From sequence record MT661596.1: 64,000 bases of DNA; one strand, given 5' to 3'. The notes under the pieces were generated by a model that was not told the origin of the DNA, made no database searches, and saw nothing but the letters and a program-made list of their open reading frames with translations. The position numbers and the translations under genes are program-made. This document shows positions 579 to 12,339 of this stretch, one piece after another. The stretch's first letter is position 1. Each line of letters begins with the position of its first letter.

Positions 579-1815
579 ACAAACACCCAAAGAGCAAAAA
601 CAACTTCGTAAACAAGTGGCTGCTTTTGGCGGGTTGCAGTGGGAACACGACTGGGCTAACACCATTGGTCCTCACCTTGATAATTTGTTTCGCGATAACT
701 TAACTAATAAAGTACATCGCGAATATAAAGGTAAAGAACGCTTCCCTGTTAACTTTGGTATCGATTTGTCTGTTGATATGGCTAATCGTCGGTTTGTATT
801 GGTTGAATGGAAAACCTTTACAAAGGTGACCGATATTCGTGAAGCGGTAGAATCGGGCGAAGCTGAGGTTCAAACATTCTTTATTTCATTTAATGCTCTA
901 CAAGCTCAGGCTCGTAAAGCGACAGAAATGAAACAGAAACTCGATGCACGTTGGTGTTGTGTTCCAGAAGTCCCTGTTGTTGAAACAAAACCAGGTGCAG
1001 CTGACTGGTTGAAAGAACTACGCGCTGACGTAACCTCATACATGGTTAAGGCAAAAGAAATCTACATGAATAAGGTATCTGAACTCTCTAAAGAGTACGG
1101 TGAACTTAATGACCAAAACTTGTATGTTGGTGTTAATTTCGGTTATGATACCGATACGCGTAAACTCGTTTATATCTTGCAAACGCAAGGTCCTTTAGAT
1201 GCTATTAAAGGCGTCCCTTATAAACAAGACCACCGTGACTTGGATATGGGTGATTTAGAATTACCTACCCACGAACGCGATGTTAATGGTATTAACGCTC
1301 CAGCTATTCTAGCTGACCTTGTCGCTGAGGAAGGTGGGTGGATTCGTATTAGCCGTCCATCAAAAGACTGTTATGATAATAATGCTAAAGAACTAGTTGA
1401 TATCTTAATGGAACGCGCGACAGTCACTTGTGATAAAGCGATTGAGATTGCGGCTGACCACGGTATCTCTGGTGAACCTAAAGTTGTTTTTGATTCGTCT
1501 ACTGGTCGCCTTGATATCTACTATCATAACGACGGTCAAGCACATAAAGACCTTGATGAAGTGGGTCGTTTAAAAATGGGTCGAAACGTAGGTAACCTAC
1601 TTGATGTTATAACTCGTGTAGAGCCAGACCTATGGGTTGTAGCGTTACCGAAGTTCAACACCGTGTTCACAGATAAGTATGGTGACAACATCCCACCTAA
1701 ATATACTTTTGTTAAAGTAGAGCCTATCAAAGAAGATTTATCTGCTCGTGGGCTAACTAAAGTACACACCCCTATCGACGAATCGCCATTAGCGAATGAA
1801 GAGGTTATTCATTAA
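571..1815 (+). CDS. hypothetical protein, possible three-fold internal repeat
   Basis: 414-aa ORF, AAGGA RBS upstream, no recognised family. Confidence 0.75.
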   Translation: MSKQTPKEQKQLRKQVAAFGGLQWEHDWANTIGPHLDNLFRDNLTNKVHREYKGKERFPVNFGIDLSVDMANRRFVLVEWKTFTKVTDIREAVESGEAEVQTFFISFNALQAQARKATEMKQKLDARWCCVPEVPVVETKPGAADWLKELRADVTSYMVKAKEIYMNKVSELSKEYGELNDQNLYVGVNFGYDTDTRKLVYILQTQGPLDAIKGVPYKQDHRDLDMGDLELPTHERDVNGINAPAILADLVAEEGGWIRISRPSKDCYDNNAKELVDILMERATVTCDKAIEIAADHGISGEPKVVFDSSTGRLDIYYHNDGQAHKDLDEVGRLKMGRNVGNLLDVITRVEPDLWVVALPKFNTVFTDKYGDNIPPKYTFVKVEPIKEDLSARGLTKVHTPIDESPLANEEVIH

Positions 1816-1958
1816 TGTGCGACACTGACACAGTTGATGTTGTGTGCGATGATGGAAGTATTAAAAGAATGACTGTTGCTGAAGTTGATGCGTTACGCAT
1901 TCAGTGTAAGATGGTATTTGTTGTTCCGGGTAGTCGTCGTAAACAAAAAGATAACTAA
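1815..1958 (+). CDS. small hypothetical protein (47 aa)
   Basis: ATG overlaps the upstream TAA (TAATG); reads MCDTDTVDVVCDDGSIKRMTVAEVDALRIQCKMVFVVPGSRRKQKDN; followed directly by a terminator; below the ORF-track cutoff. Confidence 0.6.
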   Translation: MCDTDTVDVVCDDGSIKRMTVAEVDALRIQCKMVFVVPGSRRKQKDN

Positions 1959-1968
1959 ACTGACATAG

Positions 1969-2007
1969 GAGAGGATAAGGGTAATTCCTTATCCTCTCTT
2001 TATGCCG
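1969..2007 (+). terminator. hairpin terminator with TTTATGCCG tail
   Basis: 12-bp stem gagaggataagg/ccttatcctctc followed by tttatgccg. Confidence 0.8.
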
Positions 2008-2023
2008 TTTAAAAATCATTTAT

Positions 2024-2063
2024 TTTAAGTTGCAGTTAATTTCAGACCTATATGACCCACATG
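2024..2063 (+). promoter_or_regulatory. putative early (vRNAP) promoter, copy 1 of a duplicated cassette
   Basis: 29-bp tttaagttgcagttaatttcagacctata is identical at 4117-4145 and ends in a CCTATATTAC-like element (the phiKZ early promoter core is TATTAC). Confidence 0.65.
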
Positions 2064-2121
2064 AATAAACAGTAGTAAAGAAGAAAATACATTAACCTAA
2101 CTAATAACCCAGGAGTATATC

Positions 2122-2448
2122 ATGGAAAATACATTAATCTCTAACTTATTCGCTAAAGCAACTGAAGAAGAAAAAGCACTTATCCTTAAAGTGTTATCTT
2201 CTAAAGCCGCTGACAAAGACCAAGCATTATCCGATTTAAATAAACTTGCAAAAGAAAAGGAAGTAATTGTGGATGTTGTTAATACAGAAGAAGTAAATGC
2301 ACCTGAAACTAAATCAGGTATTGTTAAAACTGCAGCCATTGCAGGCGGTGTAGTATTAGCGGGTGTAGCAGCTTATATGCTCTATACTAAATTCGGTAAG
2401 AAAGCAGCATCAGTTGTAACCGGCACTGAAGAAGCTCCAGCGGAATAA
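2122..2448 (+). CDS. small bitopic membrane protein, EVNAPE family
   Basis: AGGAG RBS; EEVNAPET then TM helix AAIAGGVVLAGVAAYMLY, basic KFGKK and an acidic tail. Confidence 0.8.
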   Translation: MENTLISNLFAKATEEEKALILKVLSSKAADKDQALSDLNKLAKEKEVIVDVVNTEEVNAPETKSGIVKTAAIAGGVVLAGVAAYMLYTKFGKKAASVVTGTEEAPAE

Positions 2449-2503
2449 CCAGCAACGGGAAGCCGTCATGGATACAGTAGCTGTAACCAGTAGCACCAAA
2501 AAC

Positions 2504-2532
2504 AGCCTCCTGCTAAGGAGGCTTTTATGACC
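2504..2532 (+). terminator. hairpin terminator with TTTATG tail
   Basis: agcctcct-gcta-aggaggct followed by tttatgacc. Confidence 0.65.
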
Positions 2533-2616
2533 CACCTAACATAACCGCTCCTTATTAGGGGTGGTTATAACTAACACTTAAAAGAAACCCATCCCTAATT
2601 AAAGAAGGAACGTATT

Positions 2617-3063
2617 ATGTCAAACGAAAAATTAGCAGTTGTTTTATCACCAGTATTCATCGAAATCGTCACTGAGTTACGTACACAGTACGATAACCTT
2701 GAAACCATCGCACGCTTAGCAGAACGCCGCTTAATCTATCGCGGTGTAGAAGCTGCTTACGACGTCCTTATCACAGCAGAAGATGTTGCTTTAGCACTGA
2801 ATGTTGATTACGAACAAACAATCAAAACCAACTACGCAGTTAACCTGTATACTTGGTTAACAAAGAACTTACACACGCTGGTTGGTTGTGCTAAGAACTT
2901 AACTAAAGATACTTTAACTAAAGTATGGAACTCATACGCTGAATACGTGACAGCGAATAGCTATGACCCACTGTGGTTGAAAACTAAGATGTATAAATCA
3001 AATAACCCAATGTACTCTGCATTCGGTGTTATGTGTAAAAACATCTTAGATAAAGCTGCATAA
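2617..3063 (+). CDS. hypothetical protein
   Basis: 148-aa ORF, AAGGA RBS. Confidence 0.75.
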   Translation: MSNEKLAVVLSPVFIEIVTELRTQYDNLETIARLAERRLIYRGVEAAYDVLITAEDVALALNVDYEQTIKTNYAVNLYTWLTKNLHTLVGCAKNLTKDTLTKVWNSYAEYVTANSYDPLWLKTKMYKSNNPMYSAFGVMCKNILDKAA

Positions 3064-3126
3064 GTAAATTAGGGTAGGTGTAATGACCTACCCACTAAGT
3101 TCAATTATTAATCACCGGAGTTATAC

Positions 3127-3525
3127 ATGCTAGCCATTAATACATTAGATGCAATCATTACTAAAGTGAACGAAACAACAAGTCATGCTTTGTCAGTTCA
3201 AGTTAAAGCGCGCAATTCGGTTAAGTTAAATCCAGAAATAGATTTAGCACATTACGAATTAGCATCTAAAACTTTAGCTGTTACAATCGCCGTGCTCACA
3301 GCAGGTGCGCAATCTTTACTTTCAGCTGCTGAACTATATGGTGAAGAAGATGCGATTAACTACATCGGTCATCGTATATTGGAACTTGCTGAGTCTGTTG
3401 ACCGTATTAGTCGGGATGTGGCGGTGTACACGACTCAACAAAAAGGTCTTATCAAACTCATCTTGTCAGATGATTCAACACCCACTGATTTAACGGGTGA
3501 TAGAGCAGACATTACTTTGCATTAA
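3127..3525 (+). CDS. hypothetical helical protein
   Basis: 132-aa ORF, GGAG RBS. Confidence 0.7.
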   Translation: MLAINTLDAIITKVNETTSHALSVQVKARNSVKLNPEIDLAHYELASKTLAVTIAVLTAGAQSLLSAAELYGEEDAINYIGHRILELAESVDRISRDVAVYTTQQKGLIKLILSDDSTPTDLTGDRADITLH

Positions 3526-3592
3526 TAATAAACGATTTAATCTTCACATACCAGAAATACCCCAATCCAAATTAATTACCAGGAGTGCTACA

Positions 3593-4114
3593 ATGAATGA
3601 CTTTGACTACAACTTAGAAACTTTTAAACGTGTACTAACAACTATGTCAACTTGGAAGGTTACAGAGAAGCAAGCAAATGCATTAAAAGAGTTACGTTGT
3701 AATCCTGCATTTGAAGCTGTGTTTGGTAGCATCTATGAAGATAAAGGAATTATCACTGAACGTCAGTTATCTGAACTCACCAACTTTAAATTCAGTACCT
3801 ACGCATTAGTCCAGCAATATATTCGCGACCCTAATATTAGACTCACTGAGTTAGGTGAGGTGTACATTATGTGCGCCCCAAGGTCTATGTGGGGAGCTGT
3901 CAATTACAACAACCAACCGACCACGGTATTCATTATGTTAGATGAAGAACCGGAAGAGTCTTACGATAACGTCATTAAAATATACTTTATTGTTGATGAG
4001 AAGGTTAGATACACCGGATACTTCGTCACACACCCTGGCTTCTATAATGTATTAATTGATGCGTTAAACAAATACGTTCCAGAGAACGTTAAAGTCGTTG
4101 CTAAGAAATCGTAA
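3593..4114 (+). CDS. hypothetical protein
   Basis: ORF track gives 3497; the ATG at 3593 has an AGGAG RBS and is the more likely start. Confidence 0.7.
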   Translation: MNDFDYNLETFKRVLTTMSTWKVTEKQANALKELRCNPAFEAVFGSIYEDKGIITERQLSELTNFKFSTYALVQQYIRDPNIRLTELGEVYIMCAPRSMWGAVNYNNQPTTVFIMLDEEPEESYDNVIKIYFIVDEKVRYTGYFVTHPGFYNVLIDALNKYVPENVKVVAKKS

Positions 4115-4116
4115 CA

Positions 4117-4156
4117 TTTAAGTTGCAGTTAATTTCAGACCTATATAACGTAGGTG
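4117..4156 (+). promoter_or_regulatory. putative early promoter, copy 2 of duplicated cassette
   Basis: identical 29-mer to 2024-2052. Confidence 0.65.
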
Positions 4157-4206
4157 AATAAGCAGTAATAAACAACCTAACTAATAACCTTAAAAGGAAT
4201 AACTCC

Positions 4207-4482
4207 ATGTCTAATAACTTTGTAACAGAAGCAACAGAAGCAGTTGAAGAAGTCTTAAATTCTAAACCAACAACCAACAGTAATACATTGTCTGATTTAT
4301 CTGATTTAGTCGAAACGGTTGAGGTAGAAGCACCTAAGTCGTCATCTGTTGGTGCCAAGGTGGTTAAAACTACTGCGGTGTTAATTGCAGCTTCGGCAAT
4401 TGGTTATTTAGCATATAAAGCTTACAGCGCTTTGAGCAGTAAAAGTGCAACTGAAGAAACAACTCAGTCCGAACAAGCTTAA
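4207..4482 (+). CDS. small bitopic membrane protein, EVNAPE family
   Basis: EVEAPKS motif, TM helix TAVLIAASAIGYLAY, acidic tail. Confidence 0.8.
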   Translation: MSNNFVTEATEAVEEVLNSKPTTNSNTLSDLSDLVETVEVEAPKSSSVGAKVVKTTAVLIAASAIGYLAYKAYSALSSKSATEETTQSEQA

Positions 4483-4512
4483 TTTTAATCAACAATCATT
4501 AGGAGTAATATC

Positions 4513-4710
4513 ATGCAACACGTAACTATCAATACTAAAGAAGTCGACGCGCCAGAATCTAAAGTTATGGCGGGTGTTAAAATCGCAGTGGGTGCAATGG
4601 CAGTCGGTGTCGTTGCTTACGCTAGCTATGTTGGCTACAAGAAAGTTAAATCCATGCTTTCTGAAAACCCTTCTGAAGCGCCAGCTGAAACACCTGAGTC
4701 AGCGGAATAA
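4513..4710 (+). CDS. small bitopic membrane protein, EVNAPE family
   Basis: AGGAG RBS; EVDAPES motif, TM helix IAVGAMAVGVVAYASYVGY, KK, tail EAPAETPESAE. Confidence 0.8.
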   Translation: MQHVTINTKEVDAPESKVMAGVKIAVGAMAVGVVAYASYVGYKKVKSMLSENPSEAPAETPESAE

Positions 4711-4787
4711 ATCAATCATCCCCGCCGGTGGATTTACCGGCAACATTATTCAACAAACTAATTAATCACCTATAAGGAATCATCATC

Positions 4788-5180
4788 ATGACTACTCATA
4801 AAGAAACTCTGAACACTCAAGAAGTAAATGCACCTGAAACTGGTAAGACTGTTTTCCAATATGGTATCAATAAAAGTAAACTTACCATGACACAAGCTAT
4901 GGCTTCTGCATTAGCATTCTCTGGCGTCGGGTATGCGACCGGTGCTCTTTCTAGTAATACCGCTAAGTCATCCGCTATCAAAATTTTAGCAGTAAGTGCT
5001 ATACTCACTACAGCGACTGTAGGTATAACTACACTAGCCACACCAAAATCAATTCGTAACAAACGTGTCTACAGTGACTACATCGCGAACAACACTGCTA
5101 AAGATTATGCTCGTGTTGCAACATTCGGTGCAGCAACAGGTCTTGTTGCTTTAGCACTTAACAAAGCTTTCGGAAAATAA
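4788..5180 (+). CDS. multi-pass small membrane protein with EVNAPE leader
   Basis: N-terminus MTTHKETLNTQEVNAPET, then about three hydrophobic segments. Confidence 0.75.
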   Translation: MTTHKETLNTQEVNAPETGKTVFQYGINKSKLTMTQAMASALAFSGVGYATGALSSNTAKSSAIKILAVSAILTTATVGITTLATPKSIRNKRVYSDYIANNTAKDYARVATFGAATGLVALALNKAFGK

Positions 5181-5192
5181 GGAATTACCACT

Positions 5193-5402
5193 ATGACTAC
5201 TCATAAAGAAACTCTGAACACACAAGAAGTAAATGCACCTGAAACAGAAGCACTGAGCATAAAAGGTTTAGCTCTACCTACAATTACAATCGCTGTAGGT
5301 GTTGGTTTCAGTAAAGGTGAAGGCGGGCTTAATAAAGCTCTTGGTTACGGCATGGTAACAGCTGGAACTATTAAACTAATCGAACGTATTATGAAAATGT
5401 AA
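5193..5402 (+). CDS. small membrane-associated protein with EVNAPE leader
   Basis: same 18-aa N-terminus as 4788..5180, different body. Confidence 0.75.
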   Translation: MTTHKETLNTQEVNAPETEALSIKGLALPTITIAVGVGFSKGEGGLNKALGYGMVTAGTIKLIERIMKM

Positions 5403-5404
5403 AC

Positions 5405-5463
5405 CGGCATAAGAGGAGTCCCTTTTGGGGCTCCTCACTTTATGCTGACTTATTTTTTTTTTT
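5405..5463. terminator. bidirectional terminator
   Basis: cggcataa + gaggagtccc-tttt-ggggctcctc + tttatgctg + T-run, between convergent genes. Confidence 0.85.
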
Positions 5464-5464
5464 G

Positions 5465-6103
5465 TTAAGGATTACCACCACTCAAAGAAATAATTTTATC
5501 TTCAAGGTCTTTGATAATAATTTTAAGTTGAGTGTTCTCTTCCGTTAACTTGATGTTAGCTGCATGTTCGGTCTCACGGCGTTTAATACGTGACACTCGG
5601 TTACGTTCAGCTACACGATGCTGCTCCACAGTGATTGCGTTTGTGGATGGTGCGGTTGATAAGGTAACTGTGACTTTCTCAGCACCCGTTAAATCACTAG
5701 CCGCCGCTTCTATGACATCAATAAGTTGCTGCAATTGCTCACTTACGGAAGTTGGTAACGCTCCAAGAGAACATGATAAAACGATATGCTCATAACGGAT
5801 TGCAGAGTCATCTGGGTACTTTAATATGTAGGAACTAGGGACATATATAGGTGGCTCTTCTAATGACGTCAGTGTTATGACGTGCTCTAGAGACTCCTTA
5901 TCTTTCTCATAATCCTTTTCAGTTAACCCCTTGGGTTTATAGACTTCATTAAACACATCAACATTATCCAGTAACATCTCATCGATAGTTCTGGTTGCTT
6001 CAACAGTGTATATTACCGTTGGTGTGCATTTAAATGGTGTCTTTAACTCAAACAACCCTTTTAGCAAAATAGGTATAAGTTGAGGTTTTAAAGTAGCTGT
6101 CAT
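5465..6103 (-). CDS. phiKZ-like conserved (probable virion) protein with C-terminal coiled coil
   Basis: 212-aa ORF coupled to the upstream gene; position beside RNase H matches the recalled phiKZ block. Confidence 0.55.
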   Translation of the reverse strand: MTATLKPQLIPILLKGLFELKTPFKCTPTVIYTVEATRTIDEMLLDNVDVFNEVYKPKGLTEKDYEKDKESLEHVITLTSLEEPPIYVPSSYILKYPDDSAIRYEHIVLSCSLGALPTSVSEQLQQLIDVIEAAASDLTGAEKVTVTLSTAPSTNAITVEQHRVAERNRVSRIKRRETEHAANIKLTEENTQLKIIIKDLEDKIISLSGGNP

Positions 6104-9579: not shown

Positions 9580-10362
9580 TTACTTACTGAGTTCGGCAAT
9601 TGTGTTATTTAAAGCATTACCAGTTGTGATAGCCAGTGTTGTACAAACAGAGTACATATCAGCATGGCGAGCTGTTGCGAGAACTGTATCTGACAGACTT
9701 CTTAAAATAGGCTTAGAAAGCTCAAGGTGACCTTCAGTAATAGAACGCTGTAATGTATCAACTAAGTCGCTAAGACGTTGTATGCTAGCGTCCACGCCCG
9801 CTACGCTACCCTTTAAGAAATCACTGAAGATATTATCAACATCTCGACATGCATGTTCGAATTCATTCATGTTTGAAAACTTTGCACCAAAGGTCGATAC
9901 CTCTGTATCGCGGCCGCTCAACGCTTTACCAATAACACTCTCCATGCTAATTCGATATCCGTCTTTAGATAAAGGTGCTTGGGTTGAACCGGCTTTACCC
10001 GCTGCCAATAAAGCCATCCATTTAGTCACGTCAGGAATCGATTCTTTTTCAACAAAAGTCATATATACTTTGCAAGAAGACAACACCGGAATAAAGTCTT
10101 TATAAGACCCTTTCATACGGCGTGGTGTAAATACACGCTTTTCCATTAAAGTTGCATAATTGTTATTACGCAATAATTTGTTCATACCAGCGATATTAAT
10201 TTGAATAACTGGGGTCTTGTGACCTTCAATAACTGAGGCAATGTATTTCTTAGCACCCTCGAACAGTTTACCAATACTAGATTTACCATCAAAGTCTTCC
10301 ATACCTGCGTTATCAAACACAGTTTTACAATCTTGTTCTAAGTCCGAAAATGTGTACATCAT
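9580..10362 (-). CDS. probable head/inner-body protein with protease-cleavable propeptide
   Basis: N-terminal AGME motif fits the phiKZ-type S/A/G-X-E cleavage consensus; sits between RNase H and RecA as recalled for phiKZ gp153. Confidence 0.55.
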   Translation of the reverse strand: MMYTFSDLEQDCKTVFDNAGMEDFDGKSSIGKLFEGAKKYIASVIEGHKTPVIQINIAGMNKLLRNNNYATLMEKRVFTPRRMKGSYKDFIPVLSSCKVYMTFVEKESIPDVTKWMALLAAGKAGSTQAPLSKDGYRISMESVIGKALSGRDTEVSTFGAKFSNMNEFEHACRDVDNIFSDFLKGSVAGVDASIQRLSDLVDTLQRSITEGHLELSKPILRSLSDTVLATARHADMYSVCTTLAITTGNALNNTIAELSK

Positions 10363-10449
10363 TAGTGCTCCGTTTGCTGGATGTAATTATTAACATATAA
10401 TGACTTACTATGAAGGTTGTTATTTAATTAAGTAATAGGAAAAAATACA

Positions 10450-11850
10450 ATGTCAAGCATTATTCAGTTTGGTGAGTTCGTTGAACGTTCTGCTCCTATC
10501 CGCCCATTTCTTAATGTTGGTGCTGGTTTTGATATCCCAACAGGGTCTTACAAACTTGGCAAACACGGAGAGTCTATTTTAAATGGCGGTCTTGCGCCAT
10601 TCACAGCAATCGTTGGTAAAGGGAACACTTTTAAAACAGCTATTGCTTTATTCTGGATGATGCGAGTCATCCAGCGTTACGGTAACTCTAACGCATTACA
10701 CTACGATACAGAGTGTACATTTAGTCCAGACCGTATTAGTAACATTATTGACAGTATGCGTACCGGTGATATGGATGTCGACGCACTGATGGATACAGGA
10801 CGTGTATTTCTTACCGATGACTCCCGTATTAAAGGTAATAAGTGGTTTAAAAACACCATCCAAGATTATGCTGCGATGAAGAAAAAAGACCGTAAGGTCA
10901 TGGGTACGTTACCGTTCGTTGATAACAAAGGTAACTTTATTCCTTTCATGCAACCCACTGTTAATATCGGCGACTCTATGTCAGAAATGAAGTTTGATGA
11001 CTTAGAAGCAAACTACGCTAAGATGGAGATTGGTAAGGGCGAAATGCAAACCGAAGCTATGCGCGTGTCGAACGCAAAGCGTATGCTTATCGAAAAGATG
11101 CAAGGTTATTGTAATGCCGGCGCTATTTATGCAATTGTTACAGCTCACTTGGGTAAAGAGCTTAACATGGATGGTAAACCACAAGAGAAGAAAACCACCT
11201 TCATGAAACAGGGTGATAAAATCTCTAAAGTTCCTACTCAGATTCTTGGGCTACCTAATTCCGTATGGGAAATCTCTACAGGGTCTCCATTGATTCACCG
11301 TGAGTCTAAAGAGTGGTTGTACCCTAACGGTAATGATGTTGATACAAAAGGTAACCCTGATTTAATTACACTTATTGCTAAAAACTTGCGCGGTAAGAAC
11401 GGACCATCTGGTGTTCCTTTTGAATTTGTTATGTCACAGTCTCAAGGTTTGCTGGCGTCACTAACTGAATTCAACCATATCAAAAACTTTGGTCGTTATG
11501 GTTTAGGTGGCAATGACCGTAATTACTATGTTGAGTTATGCCCTGATGTGAAACTTATGCGAACAACTATCCGTGGTAAAATTGATGAACACGCAGAACT
11601 TCGTCGTGCTCTGGAAATCACCATGGAAATGTGTCAGATGACTTTCCTATGGCACAACCGTGACCCTAAATATAACATCACCCCTCTTGAACTTCGTGAA
11701 GGTCTTGAGAAGAAAGGTTATAAATGGGACCAGTTACTCAATACTCGCGGTTGGTGGTGCTACAATGAAGATGCCCACGAAAAACCATTCTTAAGTACCA
11801 TGGACTTACTTCGTATGTATCATGGCGAATATCACCCGTACTGGCTGTAA
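10450..11850 (+). CDS. uvsX: UvsX/RecA-like recombinase
   Basis: Walker A GKGNTFKT (UvsX-type FK[ST]), YDTE, GDSM, IVTAHL. Confidence 0.9.
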   Translation: MSSIIQFGEFVERSAPIRPFLNVGAGFDIPTGSYKLGKHGESILNGGLAPFTAIVGKGNTFKTAIALFWMMRVIQRYGNSNALHYDTECTFSPDRISNIIDSMRTGDMDVDALMDTGRVFLTDDSRIKGNKWFKNTIQDYAAMKKKDRKVMGTLPFVDNKGNFIPFMQPTVNIGDSMSEMKFDDLEANYAKMEIGKGEMQTEAMRVSNAKRMLIEKMQGYCNAGAIYAIVTAHLGKELNMDGKPQEKKTTFMKQGDKISKVPTQILGLPNSVWEISTGSPLIHRESKEWLYPNGNDVDTKGNPDLITLIAKNLRGKNGPSGVPFEFVMSQSQGLLASLTEFNHIKNFGRYGLGGNDRNYYVELCPDVKLMRTTIRGKIDEHAELRRALEITMEMCQMTFLWHNRDPKYNITPLELREGLEKKGYKWDQLLNTRGWWCYNEDAHEKPFLSTMDLLRMYHGEYHPYWL

Positions 11851-11922: not shown

Positions 11923-12339
11923 ATGATTACTAAAGAGTTTAGAATCGTAGTTTCGAGCGTTAAAGGTTTTAATGATAAAGCTCGGTTACAACACGCGGTG
12001 AACTCATTGTTAGGCGATATATTTGCCATGAATGAGGAAACCACCTCTGACGACGACGAGATGATTGATGATTCTAAAATCCTTGTTATGGTTAATGGAG
12101 AACGTAATACCGCAGCAACGATGTTAGAAGATATCATTCCCGTTACTATAGACACCGAAATTATTAAAGTCGACTGGTCTAAAGGTAAGAAAGCCTTTTA
12201 TGATAACTGCTCTGTCCTTGGCGGTCGTGCAACACACGCTATTGTGTTCTGGGACGACAAAGATGAAGGTCAACGCAGTTTAATCAAAGCATGTCTAGAG
12301 AATGGCGCTAGAGTTCGTTTGTACCCCTCAGCTGTGTAG
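11923..12339 (+). CDS. degenerate SLOG/DUF2493-like protein
   Basis: RIVVSSVKGFND...VDWSKGKKA...AIVFWDDKDEGQRSLI parallels the SLOG domain of the next gene. Confidence 0.55.
   Translation: MITKEFRIVVSSVKGFNDKARLQHAVNSLLGDIFAMNEETTSDDDEMIDDSKILVMVNGERNTAATMLEDIIPVTIDTEIIKVDWSKGKKAFYDNCSVLGGRATHAIVFWDDKDEGQRSLIKACLENGARVRLYPSAV

Follow-up and report, generated by a model that had tools for sequence, protein, structure and literature searches.

A short peptide shared by five predicted small membrane proteins of Proteus phage 10

What would five small, hydrophobic phage proteins have in common that makes them carry the same short peptide ahead of their first helix? The question is raised by a gene cluster of Proteus phage 10 (MT661596.1; 223,209 bp; host, Proteus mirabilis), a record in which nearly every gene is annotated as a hypothetical protein. 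The cluster lies in a stretch of 64,000 nucleotides (nt), called the window below, whose coordinates become those of the record when 62,000 is added; its positions 1800-5600 match the record with 100% identity. Its five genes, here named A to E, encode the motif E-V-[NDE]-A-P, and the initial annotation described them as a paralogous family of small early membrane proteins that may be an undescribed set of effectors. The handling of the host membrane by nucleus-forming jumbo phages is poorly understood, and no phage-encoded early-stage membrane protein has been identified in them (PMC12908238); the cluster offers a defined, selected, and probably early membrane set with a five-residue peptide as a handle. 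Our favored reading, to which we give a probability of roughly one half, is that A to E are accessory early inner-membrane proteins that share a short docking or sorting peptide.

The shared peptide and its constraint

The five open reading frames listed in the initial annotation were recovered with their motif strings, all on the + strand. They are given below with their lengths in amino acids (aa), their predicted transmembrane (TM) segments, and the ratio of nonsynonymous to synonymous substitution rates (dN/dS).

2122-2448, + strand: gene A, 108 aa; helical charged N-terminal domain, EVNAP at 2290-2304, one TM helix ending in A-Y-x-x-Y, KFGKK, acidic tail; dN/dS 0.17
4207-4482, + strand: gene B, 91 aa; acidic N-terminal region, EVEAP at 4321-4335 followed by K-S, one TM helix ending in A-Y-x-x-Y, acidic tail; dN/dS 0.18
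4513-4710, + strand: gene C, 65 aa; EVDAP as residues 10-14 (4540-4554), one TM helix, KKVK, acidic tail; dN/dS 0.20
4788-5180, + strand: gene D, 130 aa; EVNAP as residues 12-16 (4821-4835) in coil, three predicted helices, of which two or three are hydrophobic; dN/dS 0.16
5193-5402, + strand: gene E, 69 aa; EVNAP as residues 12-16 (5226-5240), two short hydrophobic stretches; dN/dS 0.10

All five genes have a Shine-Dalgarno sequence, and their products are annotated as hypothetical proteins. The motif of A, B, and C is followed by a Gly/Ala-rich helix ending in A-Y-x-x-Y, a Lys-rich cluster, and an acidic tail, as had been described for three of the proteins. Relatives of the phage were drawn from two bacterial assemblies with phage-sized contigs and from raw-read assemblies, and all five genes are intact in every relative found. 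The dN/dS values come from comparison with L005, the most diverged relative (protein identity, about 80%; synonymous divergence, dS, of 0.6-1.0), and by this measure genes A to E are under purifying selection.

The motif is confined to these genes. As a degenerate DNA pattern, E-V-[NDE]-A-P matched five times in the 64 kb window, each time in frame in one of A to E (0.05 expected), and a scan of the whole 223 kb genome in six frames likewise gave five matches, only in these genes (0.12 expected). Conservation was counted over 20 sequences, that is, five paralogues in each of four genomes. The conserved block around the motif spans about 10 residues, and within it position 3 of the motif is Asn in nine sequences, Glu in nine, and Asp in two. 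Loss of the motif in homologues had been named as a reason to abandon the idea; instead, Glu, Val, Ala, and Pro were each unchanged in 20/20 sequences, while the Val, Ala, and Pro codons each occur in two or three different forms. Since the residues are fixed while the codons vary, the constraint acts on the peptide and not on the nucleotides, and a nucleotide-level constraint was rejected on the grounds of this synonymous variation. Constraint at the peptide level is as expected for the shared short linear motif that had been proposed.

The residue after the motif Pro is Glu in 16 of the 20 sequences, Lys in two, and Ala in two, and it is Thr in P0006, a metagenomic relative described below. 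This position bears on the main rival explanation, in which the motif, ending in A-P-E, provides a prohead-protease site within a propeptide or capsid-targeting peptide. Cleavage there would strip 15-17 residues from the N termini of C, D, and E (62 from that of A) and leave hydrophobic mature portions to serve as head-associated or ejected membrane-active peptides. The prohead proteases of SPN3US, phiKZ, and 201phi2-1 cut after Glu at A-X-E or S/A/G(/T)-X-E, the SPN3US paralogues gp53 and gp54 have identical 15-residue N termini with such a site and are 34% identical overall, and T4 capsid-targeting peptides are 10-20 residues long (PMC5694885). The A-P-E of 16/20 sequences fits this specificity, and the identical 18-residue N termini of D and E resemble those of gp53 and gp54; as in the head-protein propeptides of giant phages and T4, a short N-terminal peptide ending in a small residue, X, and Glu is shared by diverged proteins. 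However, Glu after Pro is the least conserved position of the motif (B has Lys or Ala), the invariant residues lie upstream of it, and in the Erwinia relatives Glu precedes Pro. Unlike head-protein propeptides, moreover, the motif is found on hydrophobic proteins that are not known virion components: their homologues have not been annotated as virion proteins and are not listed in published lysate proteomics of relatives. Their genes have an early-type promoter and belong to an early block on the + strand, away from the late structural genes, and no other protein of phage 10 has the motif. Removal of a propeptide is thus an unlikely explanation, in our view.

In the five proteins, the motif is separated from the first hydrophobic helix by 9-20 residues. 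AlphaFold2 models of A and D, albeit of low confidence (predicted local distance difference test scores of 46.6 and 43.6), placed the motif in a coil between helices, and this placement fits a short linear motif. A position just N-terminal to the first hydrophobic helix in every case could also mean that the peptide is a determinant of membrane insertion or topology, an acidic, Pro-containing peptide that aids translocation of a short N-terminal tail through an insertase or the membrane potential, or caps the helix, with no specific partner. The motif is net acidic, with a flanking charge of about -1 on the N-terminal side and about +3 on the C-terminal side, and it is found on unrelated membrane proteins of the cluster, as such a determinant might be. 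A purely physicochemical need, however, does not account for Val, Ala, and Pro being invariant and exactly spaced in all 20 sequences; the long N-terminal domain of A, with 10 Lys/Arg residues, is unlikely to be translocated; and other small membrane proteins of the same phages do without the motif. We consider an insertion determinant possible but doubtful.

One motif on several protein families

Pairwise comparisons identified A, B, and C as true paralogues (E values of 1e-10 to 1e-6; 4e-10 for A against B and 3e-10 for A against C). D and E resemble the other three proteins only within the motif block and are identical to each other in their first 18 residues. Their 5' ends are copies of one module:

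4772-4840, + strand: 69-nt module that spans the ribosome-binding site (RBS), the start codon, and codons 1-18 of D, the motif among them; repeated directly at 5177-5245 with 93% identity
5177-5245, + strand: the other copy of this module, at the 5' end of E

Because the orthologue of E in L005 has a different N terminus, we ascribe the sharing of 5' ends by D and E to recent gene conversion. Gene conversion is also supported by a codon identity among A, D, and E that exceeds the codon-bias expectation (P of about 0.02-0.03); B and C use other codons than these three genes.

Taken to its limit, such a history would make the motif a functionless passenger that the genes have in common solely because duplication and gene conversion spread the 5' module. 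The repeat between D and E, which includes the RBS, and the excess codon identity are what this explanation would predict. It is nevertheless already largely refuted: B and C have the same residues with 0/6 codons identical, orthologues keep Glu, Val, Ala, and Pro while synonymous sites change (dN/dS, 0.10-0.20), and distant genera have the pattern too, placed likewise with respect to the helix. We judge a motif devoid of function to be very improbable.

The C-terminal 45 residues of E form a core that is homologous to PHROG 10939, a family of 62-aa proteins from Erwinia and Salmonella phages (hhalign, 92.8%; E value, 3.9e-7), and the motif region falls outside this alignment. The direct match of E to the family is weak (E value, 0.051); both follow a gene of about 120-130 aa. 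Because this homology does not extend to the motif region, shared ancestry is not enough to explain the motif; from these comparisons, it behaves as a module on different membrane proteins. The single paralogous family of the initial annotation is therefore retained for A, B, and C, but not for E, which belongs to a separate family (PHROG 10939), nor for D, which is lineage specific and shares its 5' module with E through gene conversion.

A profile search, as had been suggested earlier, was carried out exhaustively on 1.84 billion representative proteins, and it returned only the Proteus-phage lineage and a single metagenomic protein, P0006. This protein matched A with an E value of 2e-18 and the 99-aa gp141 of Erwinia phage Ea35-70 with an E value of 6e-7, with the motif positions aligned, and it matched phrog_11081 with an E value of 0.0045. 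A profile built from A, B, and C matched the Erwinia profile (hhalign, 74%; E value, 2.9e-5), and the direct match of A to gp141 was weak (E value, 0.026). A, B, and C also share their genomic position and their architecture, a helix with an aromatic end, a basic cluster, and an acidic tail, with PHROG 11081. On the strength of these profile matches, A, B, and C are members of an older single-pass family, that of Ea35-70 gp141 (PHROG 11081).

Relatives of D were found in the Proteus-phage lineage only. Against PHROG 11484, an Erwinia family of multi-helix proteins of about 120 aa, no homology was detected (hhalign probability, 0.5%), and the intermediate contig L017 gave no bridge; position, length, and helix count agree. 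Homology of D to this family, undetectable even by way of L017, was rejected. L017 itself, a 2.3 kb contig from metagenome ERR12379741, is the sole contig known of a third, intermediate lineage of the cluster. It encodes the A-like P0006, a 140-aa protein that ends in a motif-like stretch, a helix, and a basic cluster, and a D-like protein of 123 aa whose N terminus bears a variant of the peptide.

The nearest named relatives of phage 10 are the Agricanvirus phages of Erwinia, pEa_SNUABM_37, and Salmonella phage SA002, and all have in common the gene order helicase, 414-aa gene, small-gene block, DUF7194 gene, core virion gene, and RNase H. The syntenic block of the Agricanvirus/SA002-type relatives is also rich in small membrane proteins. 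In Agricanvirus, the Ea35-70 gp141 family and PHROGs 11650, 11484, and 10939 occupy the same place, flanked by the 414-aa gene on one side and the DUF7194 and virion genes on the other, behind the same upstream promoter-like element. The architectures are alike, with single-pass proteins with an aromatic helix end, a basic cluster, and an acidic tail, and a multi-helix protein of about 120 aa followed by one of about 62 aa. Unlike in Agricanvirus, the single-pass gene of the Proteus phage is triplicated and the motif is homogenized to E-V-[NDE]-A-P on five genes, whereas the Erwinia proteins have looser variants; the phage 10 cluster also lacks a 209-aa three-helix protein that Agricanvirus has.

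For a scan of the 43 small proteins of these distant relatives, the pattern E-V-x-x-P was taken strictly from the Proteus phage. Four matches were obtained against 0.64 expected (P = 0.0045), and all four lie 5-11 residues ahead of a hydrophobic 17-mer, in two unrelated families, one A-like and one D-like. Because the pattern recurs ahead of helices in the syntenic block of distant relatives, the arrangement of motif, spacer, and helix is ancient. A looser form of the motif is ancient and has been homogenized and amplified in the Proteus-phage lineage. For phage ORFans, it is unusual that a peptide module on unrelated membrane anchors is retained across genera, and this suggests one common partner.

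IMG/VR yielded two further Agricanvirus-type loci, and a metagenome scan for further loci of the cluster yielded none. At the equivalent locus of phiKZ-type and PhiPA3 genomes, next to the core virion gene, the cluster is absent. By this distribution, the cluster is confined to the clade of the Proteus phages, Agricanvirus, and SA002.

Early expression and possible roles

The noncoding features around the genes are as follows:

1967-2007, + strand: GC-rich hairpin followed by TTATGCCG; terminator-like signal that ends the unit of the 414-aa and 47-aa genes ahead of A
2024-2109, + strand: promoter-like element and conserved leader upstream of A, with CCTATATGAC at 2047-2056 and AACCTAACTAATAACC at 2094-2109; direct repeat with 4106-4189
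4117-4189, + strand: second promoter-like element and leader, upstream of B, with CCTATATAAC at 4140-4149
5413-5446, + strand: strong hairpin (5413-5436; 10 pairs, 7 of them G-C) with a TTTATGCT tail; terminator separating the B-E unit from the DUF7194 and virion genes, which are convergent with it

The genes had been said to lie downstream of early-promoter-like elements. This applies to A and B, each of which has its own element; C, D, and E are served only through B, in an apparent single operon that ends at the hairpin at 5413-5436. Both elements, of about 90 nt, are nearly invariant in relatives whose synonymous sites are saturated (dS, 0.6-1.0). A de novo search of 116 upstream regions found one dominant class of motif (class I), whose sites, numbering about 22, all lie 40-75 nt upstream of a start codon. 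The elements of A and B form a subclass of class I with one deviation, and class I also precedes the genes for chimallin and a subunit of the nonvirion RNA polymerase. Chimallin is an established early gene (PMC12908238), and the sole upstream motif that can be detected bioinformatically in such phages is the early promoter of the virion RNA polymerase (PMC7598289). Because class I precedes chimallin, and because only early promoters are detectable in this way, we infer that the A unit and the B-C-D-E unit are probably transcribed early.

The extended element also stands at both orthologous positions in three Agricanvirus genomes, and an alignment of nine sequences has 32 invariant columns, the proteins there being only 30-60% identical. 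The sites of the element and its copies are as follows:

Window: 2024-2109 and 4117-4189
L014: 20035-20110 (record ~145035)
L010: ~10290-10360 and ~11720-11800
L009: ~10380-10450 and ~12040-12120

The element and leader gave no match in Rfam and no consensus RNA fold or base pairs, so a structured RNA in the conserved leader was rejected and the extended element is read as a linear signal at the DNA level. It may mark a specially regulated subclass of early genes. A third copy of its 5' half is found elsewhere in phage 10, ahead of an unrelated 159-aa gene.

An early-type promoter also bears on the possibility that the five are holin-like or lysis-timing proteins. Their small size, and the Gly/Ala-rich helices and charged C-terminal tails of A, B, and C, would suit that role. 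The promoter, however, appears to be of the early and not the late type, and searches of the curated holin, antiholin, and spanin models in Pfam and NCBIfam gave no match above noise. No endolysin gene is adjacent (the nearest annotated muralytic gene, for a lytic transglycosylase, is about 30 kb away), and five copies sharing a motif would be atypical. A function in lysis is hard to credit on this evidence.

Proteus phage 10 encodes a PhuZ tubulin, a phiKZ gp29-type sheath, split phage RNA polymerase subunits, and a chimallin (record 138914-141031) that matched the solved chimallin/PhuN structures with E values of 1e-24 to 1e-15. Judged by this gene content, it is therefore a genuine nucleus-forming chimallivirus. 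In this family, the stage of the early phage infection (EPI) vesicle is conserved throughout, and the channels and membrane components of the vesicle are unidentified (PMC12908238). Probably early, membrane-inserted proteins of a true chimallivirus would be candidates for such components. The vesicle is shared by all chimalliviruses, however, while the cluster belongs to one clade, is absent from the equivalent locus in phiKZ and PhiPA3, and has no relatives beyond that clade among the 1.84 billion representative proteins, which argues against a core role in the vesicle. In addition, the channels must work before any early protein exists. The suggestion of a part in the early vesicle thus did not find support, and we think it highly unlikely. 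Since the cluster is clade specific and rare in public data, an accessory module for host interaction is more likely than a key to the conserved vesicle and nucleus pathway.

Sequence searches of Pfam, PHROGs, NCBIfam, and the PDB with the five proteins and their Erwinia counterparts returned no functional family. The notion of an undescribed set of membrane proteins holds in this sense: they are real, conserved, selected, predicted membrane proteins without a described family. In the reading that we favor, the cluster would encode five small inner-membrane proteins of at least three origins, with A, B, and C predicted to be single-pass proteins, D to have three helices, and E to be a small hairpin-type protein. 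Each would present one common short acidic peptide, located in a disordered stretch 9-20 residues ahead of its first hydrophobic helix. The peptide would serve as a short linear docking or sorting motif, allowing a single partner at the membrane surface to recognize different membrane anchors. Most likely, the proteins would act early, in envelope takeover or exclusion-type functions, and not at a core step of the chimallivirus cycle. Inhibition of a host membrane complex, raised in the initial annotation along with docking and superinfection exclusion, may be another role.

The superinfection exclusion proteins T4 Imm and HK97 gp15 are likewise small early inner-membrane proteins of lytic phages, which is what the phage 10 proteins are predicted to be. 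T4 Imm works by attaching to a single defined partner, the incoming tape measure protein (bioRxiv 10.64898/2026.03.06.709160), and by analogy may be regarded as the best characterized counterpart of the five proteins. Unlike the phage 10 set, it has four helices and no shared linear motif, and searches of Pfam, PHROGs, NCBIfam, and the PDB revealed no sequence or family match between the five proteins and exclusion proteins of the T4 Imm/Sp type.

Several points weigh against a shared docking or sorting peptide. Its common partner is a postulated one. Judging from their codons, A, D, and E owe some of their identity to recent gene conversion, which inflates the apparent conservation, and homology of D-type proteins across lineages could not be shown from sequence. 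The expression, membrane location, and topology of the five proteins are predictions, the structure models are of low confidence, and the topology cues conflict: the flanking charges favor an N-out orientation, and the Lys-rich N-terminal domain of A argues for N-in. The small membrane proteins of the Erwinia relatives do not appear in published lysate proteomics, although such proteins are easily missed.

Three specific candidates for what the peptide might imitate or engage were rejected or found wanting. Mimicry of the PhuZ tail was rejected: the tail of phage 10 PhuZ has a loosely similar acidic-Val-acidic stretch, but the tails of four relatives keep a pattern of their own, without Pro, that does not track the variants of the motif. 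A decoy resembling a TonB box, with colicin M and the TonB-dependent transporters in mind, was unsupported, as PDB searches with the motif peptides up to an E value of 10 gave no TonB-box protein; the colicin M paper offers no consensus for a comparison. An M48-like protein with an HExxH site (record 179753-181015), considered as a specific partner of the cluster, was rejected as a phiKZ gp084-type virion protein found in 195 records and therefore not covarying with the cluster.

Tripartite sorting signals consist of a signature motif, a hydrophobic helix, and a basic cluster and are recognized by sortase- or exosortase-type enzymes. The same order of elements, motif, short spacer, helix, and Lys/Arg, is seen in A, B, C, and the 140-aa protein of L017. 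It is conceivable, but improbable, that E-V-x-x-P with its spacer and helix is an undescribed phage sorting signal that marks unrelated small membrane proteins for one destination or processing step. If so, prohead-protease cleavage might, for example, load membrane-active peptides into the virion for later ejection into the membrane around the incoming genome, or the proteins might be recruited to a specific membrane site in early infection. Unlike the substrates of tripartite signals, C, D, and E have no N-terminal signal peptide or cargo domain, and beyond the basic cluster there is an additional acidic tail. The sorting-signal models of NCBIfam gave no match, and no cognate processing enzyme was found in the cluster.

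Neighboring genes and side observations

Three further genes lie between A and B:

2617-3063, + strand: conserved 148-aa soluble protein (PHROG 11150) within the A transcription unit; dN/dS 0.05; served as a synteny anchor
3127-3525, + strand: 132-aa gene without a hydrophobic segment, between the two motif-bearing units
3593-4114, + strand: 173-aa gene, between the two motif-bearing units

The 173-aa gene is present in phage 10 and L002 and missing from the relatives L005 and L006, an indel within an otherwise collinear block. In the 77-nt spacer between C and D, within the presumed B-E operon, a small GC hairpin with a 6-bp stem (4724-4741) may be an attenuator or processing site. Across the genome, 16 sites, those at 1967-2007 and 5413-5446 among them, combine a GC-rich hairpin with a conserved TTATGCC(G) tail and no plain T-run, often directly upstream of an early-type promoter, and these look like a phage-specific terminator or processing signal.

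The HExxH protein mentioned above, which lies outside the window (L015 5754-7016), is annotated as a beta-barrel assembly-enhancing protease. It has a borderline Peptidase_M48 match and a long hydrophobic stretch and belongs to a family of virion proteins kept in 195 jumbo phages, phiKZ gp084 included. From these features, it could be a packaged, membrane-associated metalloprotease.

Two of the contigs used for comparison, one of 220,736 bp (L002; GCA_031870755.1) and one of 224,147 bp that carries P0003 and P0007, are near-complete relatives of this lytic jumbo phage inside assemblies labeled Proteus columbae and Proteus mirabilis. The occurrence of phage-sized contigs within Proteus assemblies suggests carrier-state cultures or copurified phage DNA.

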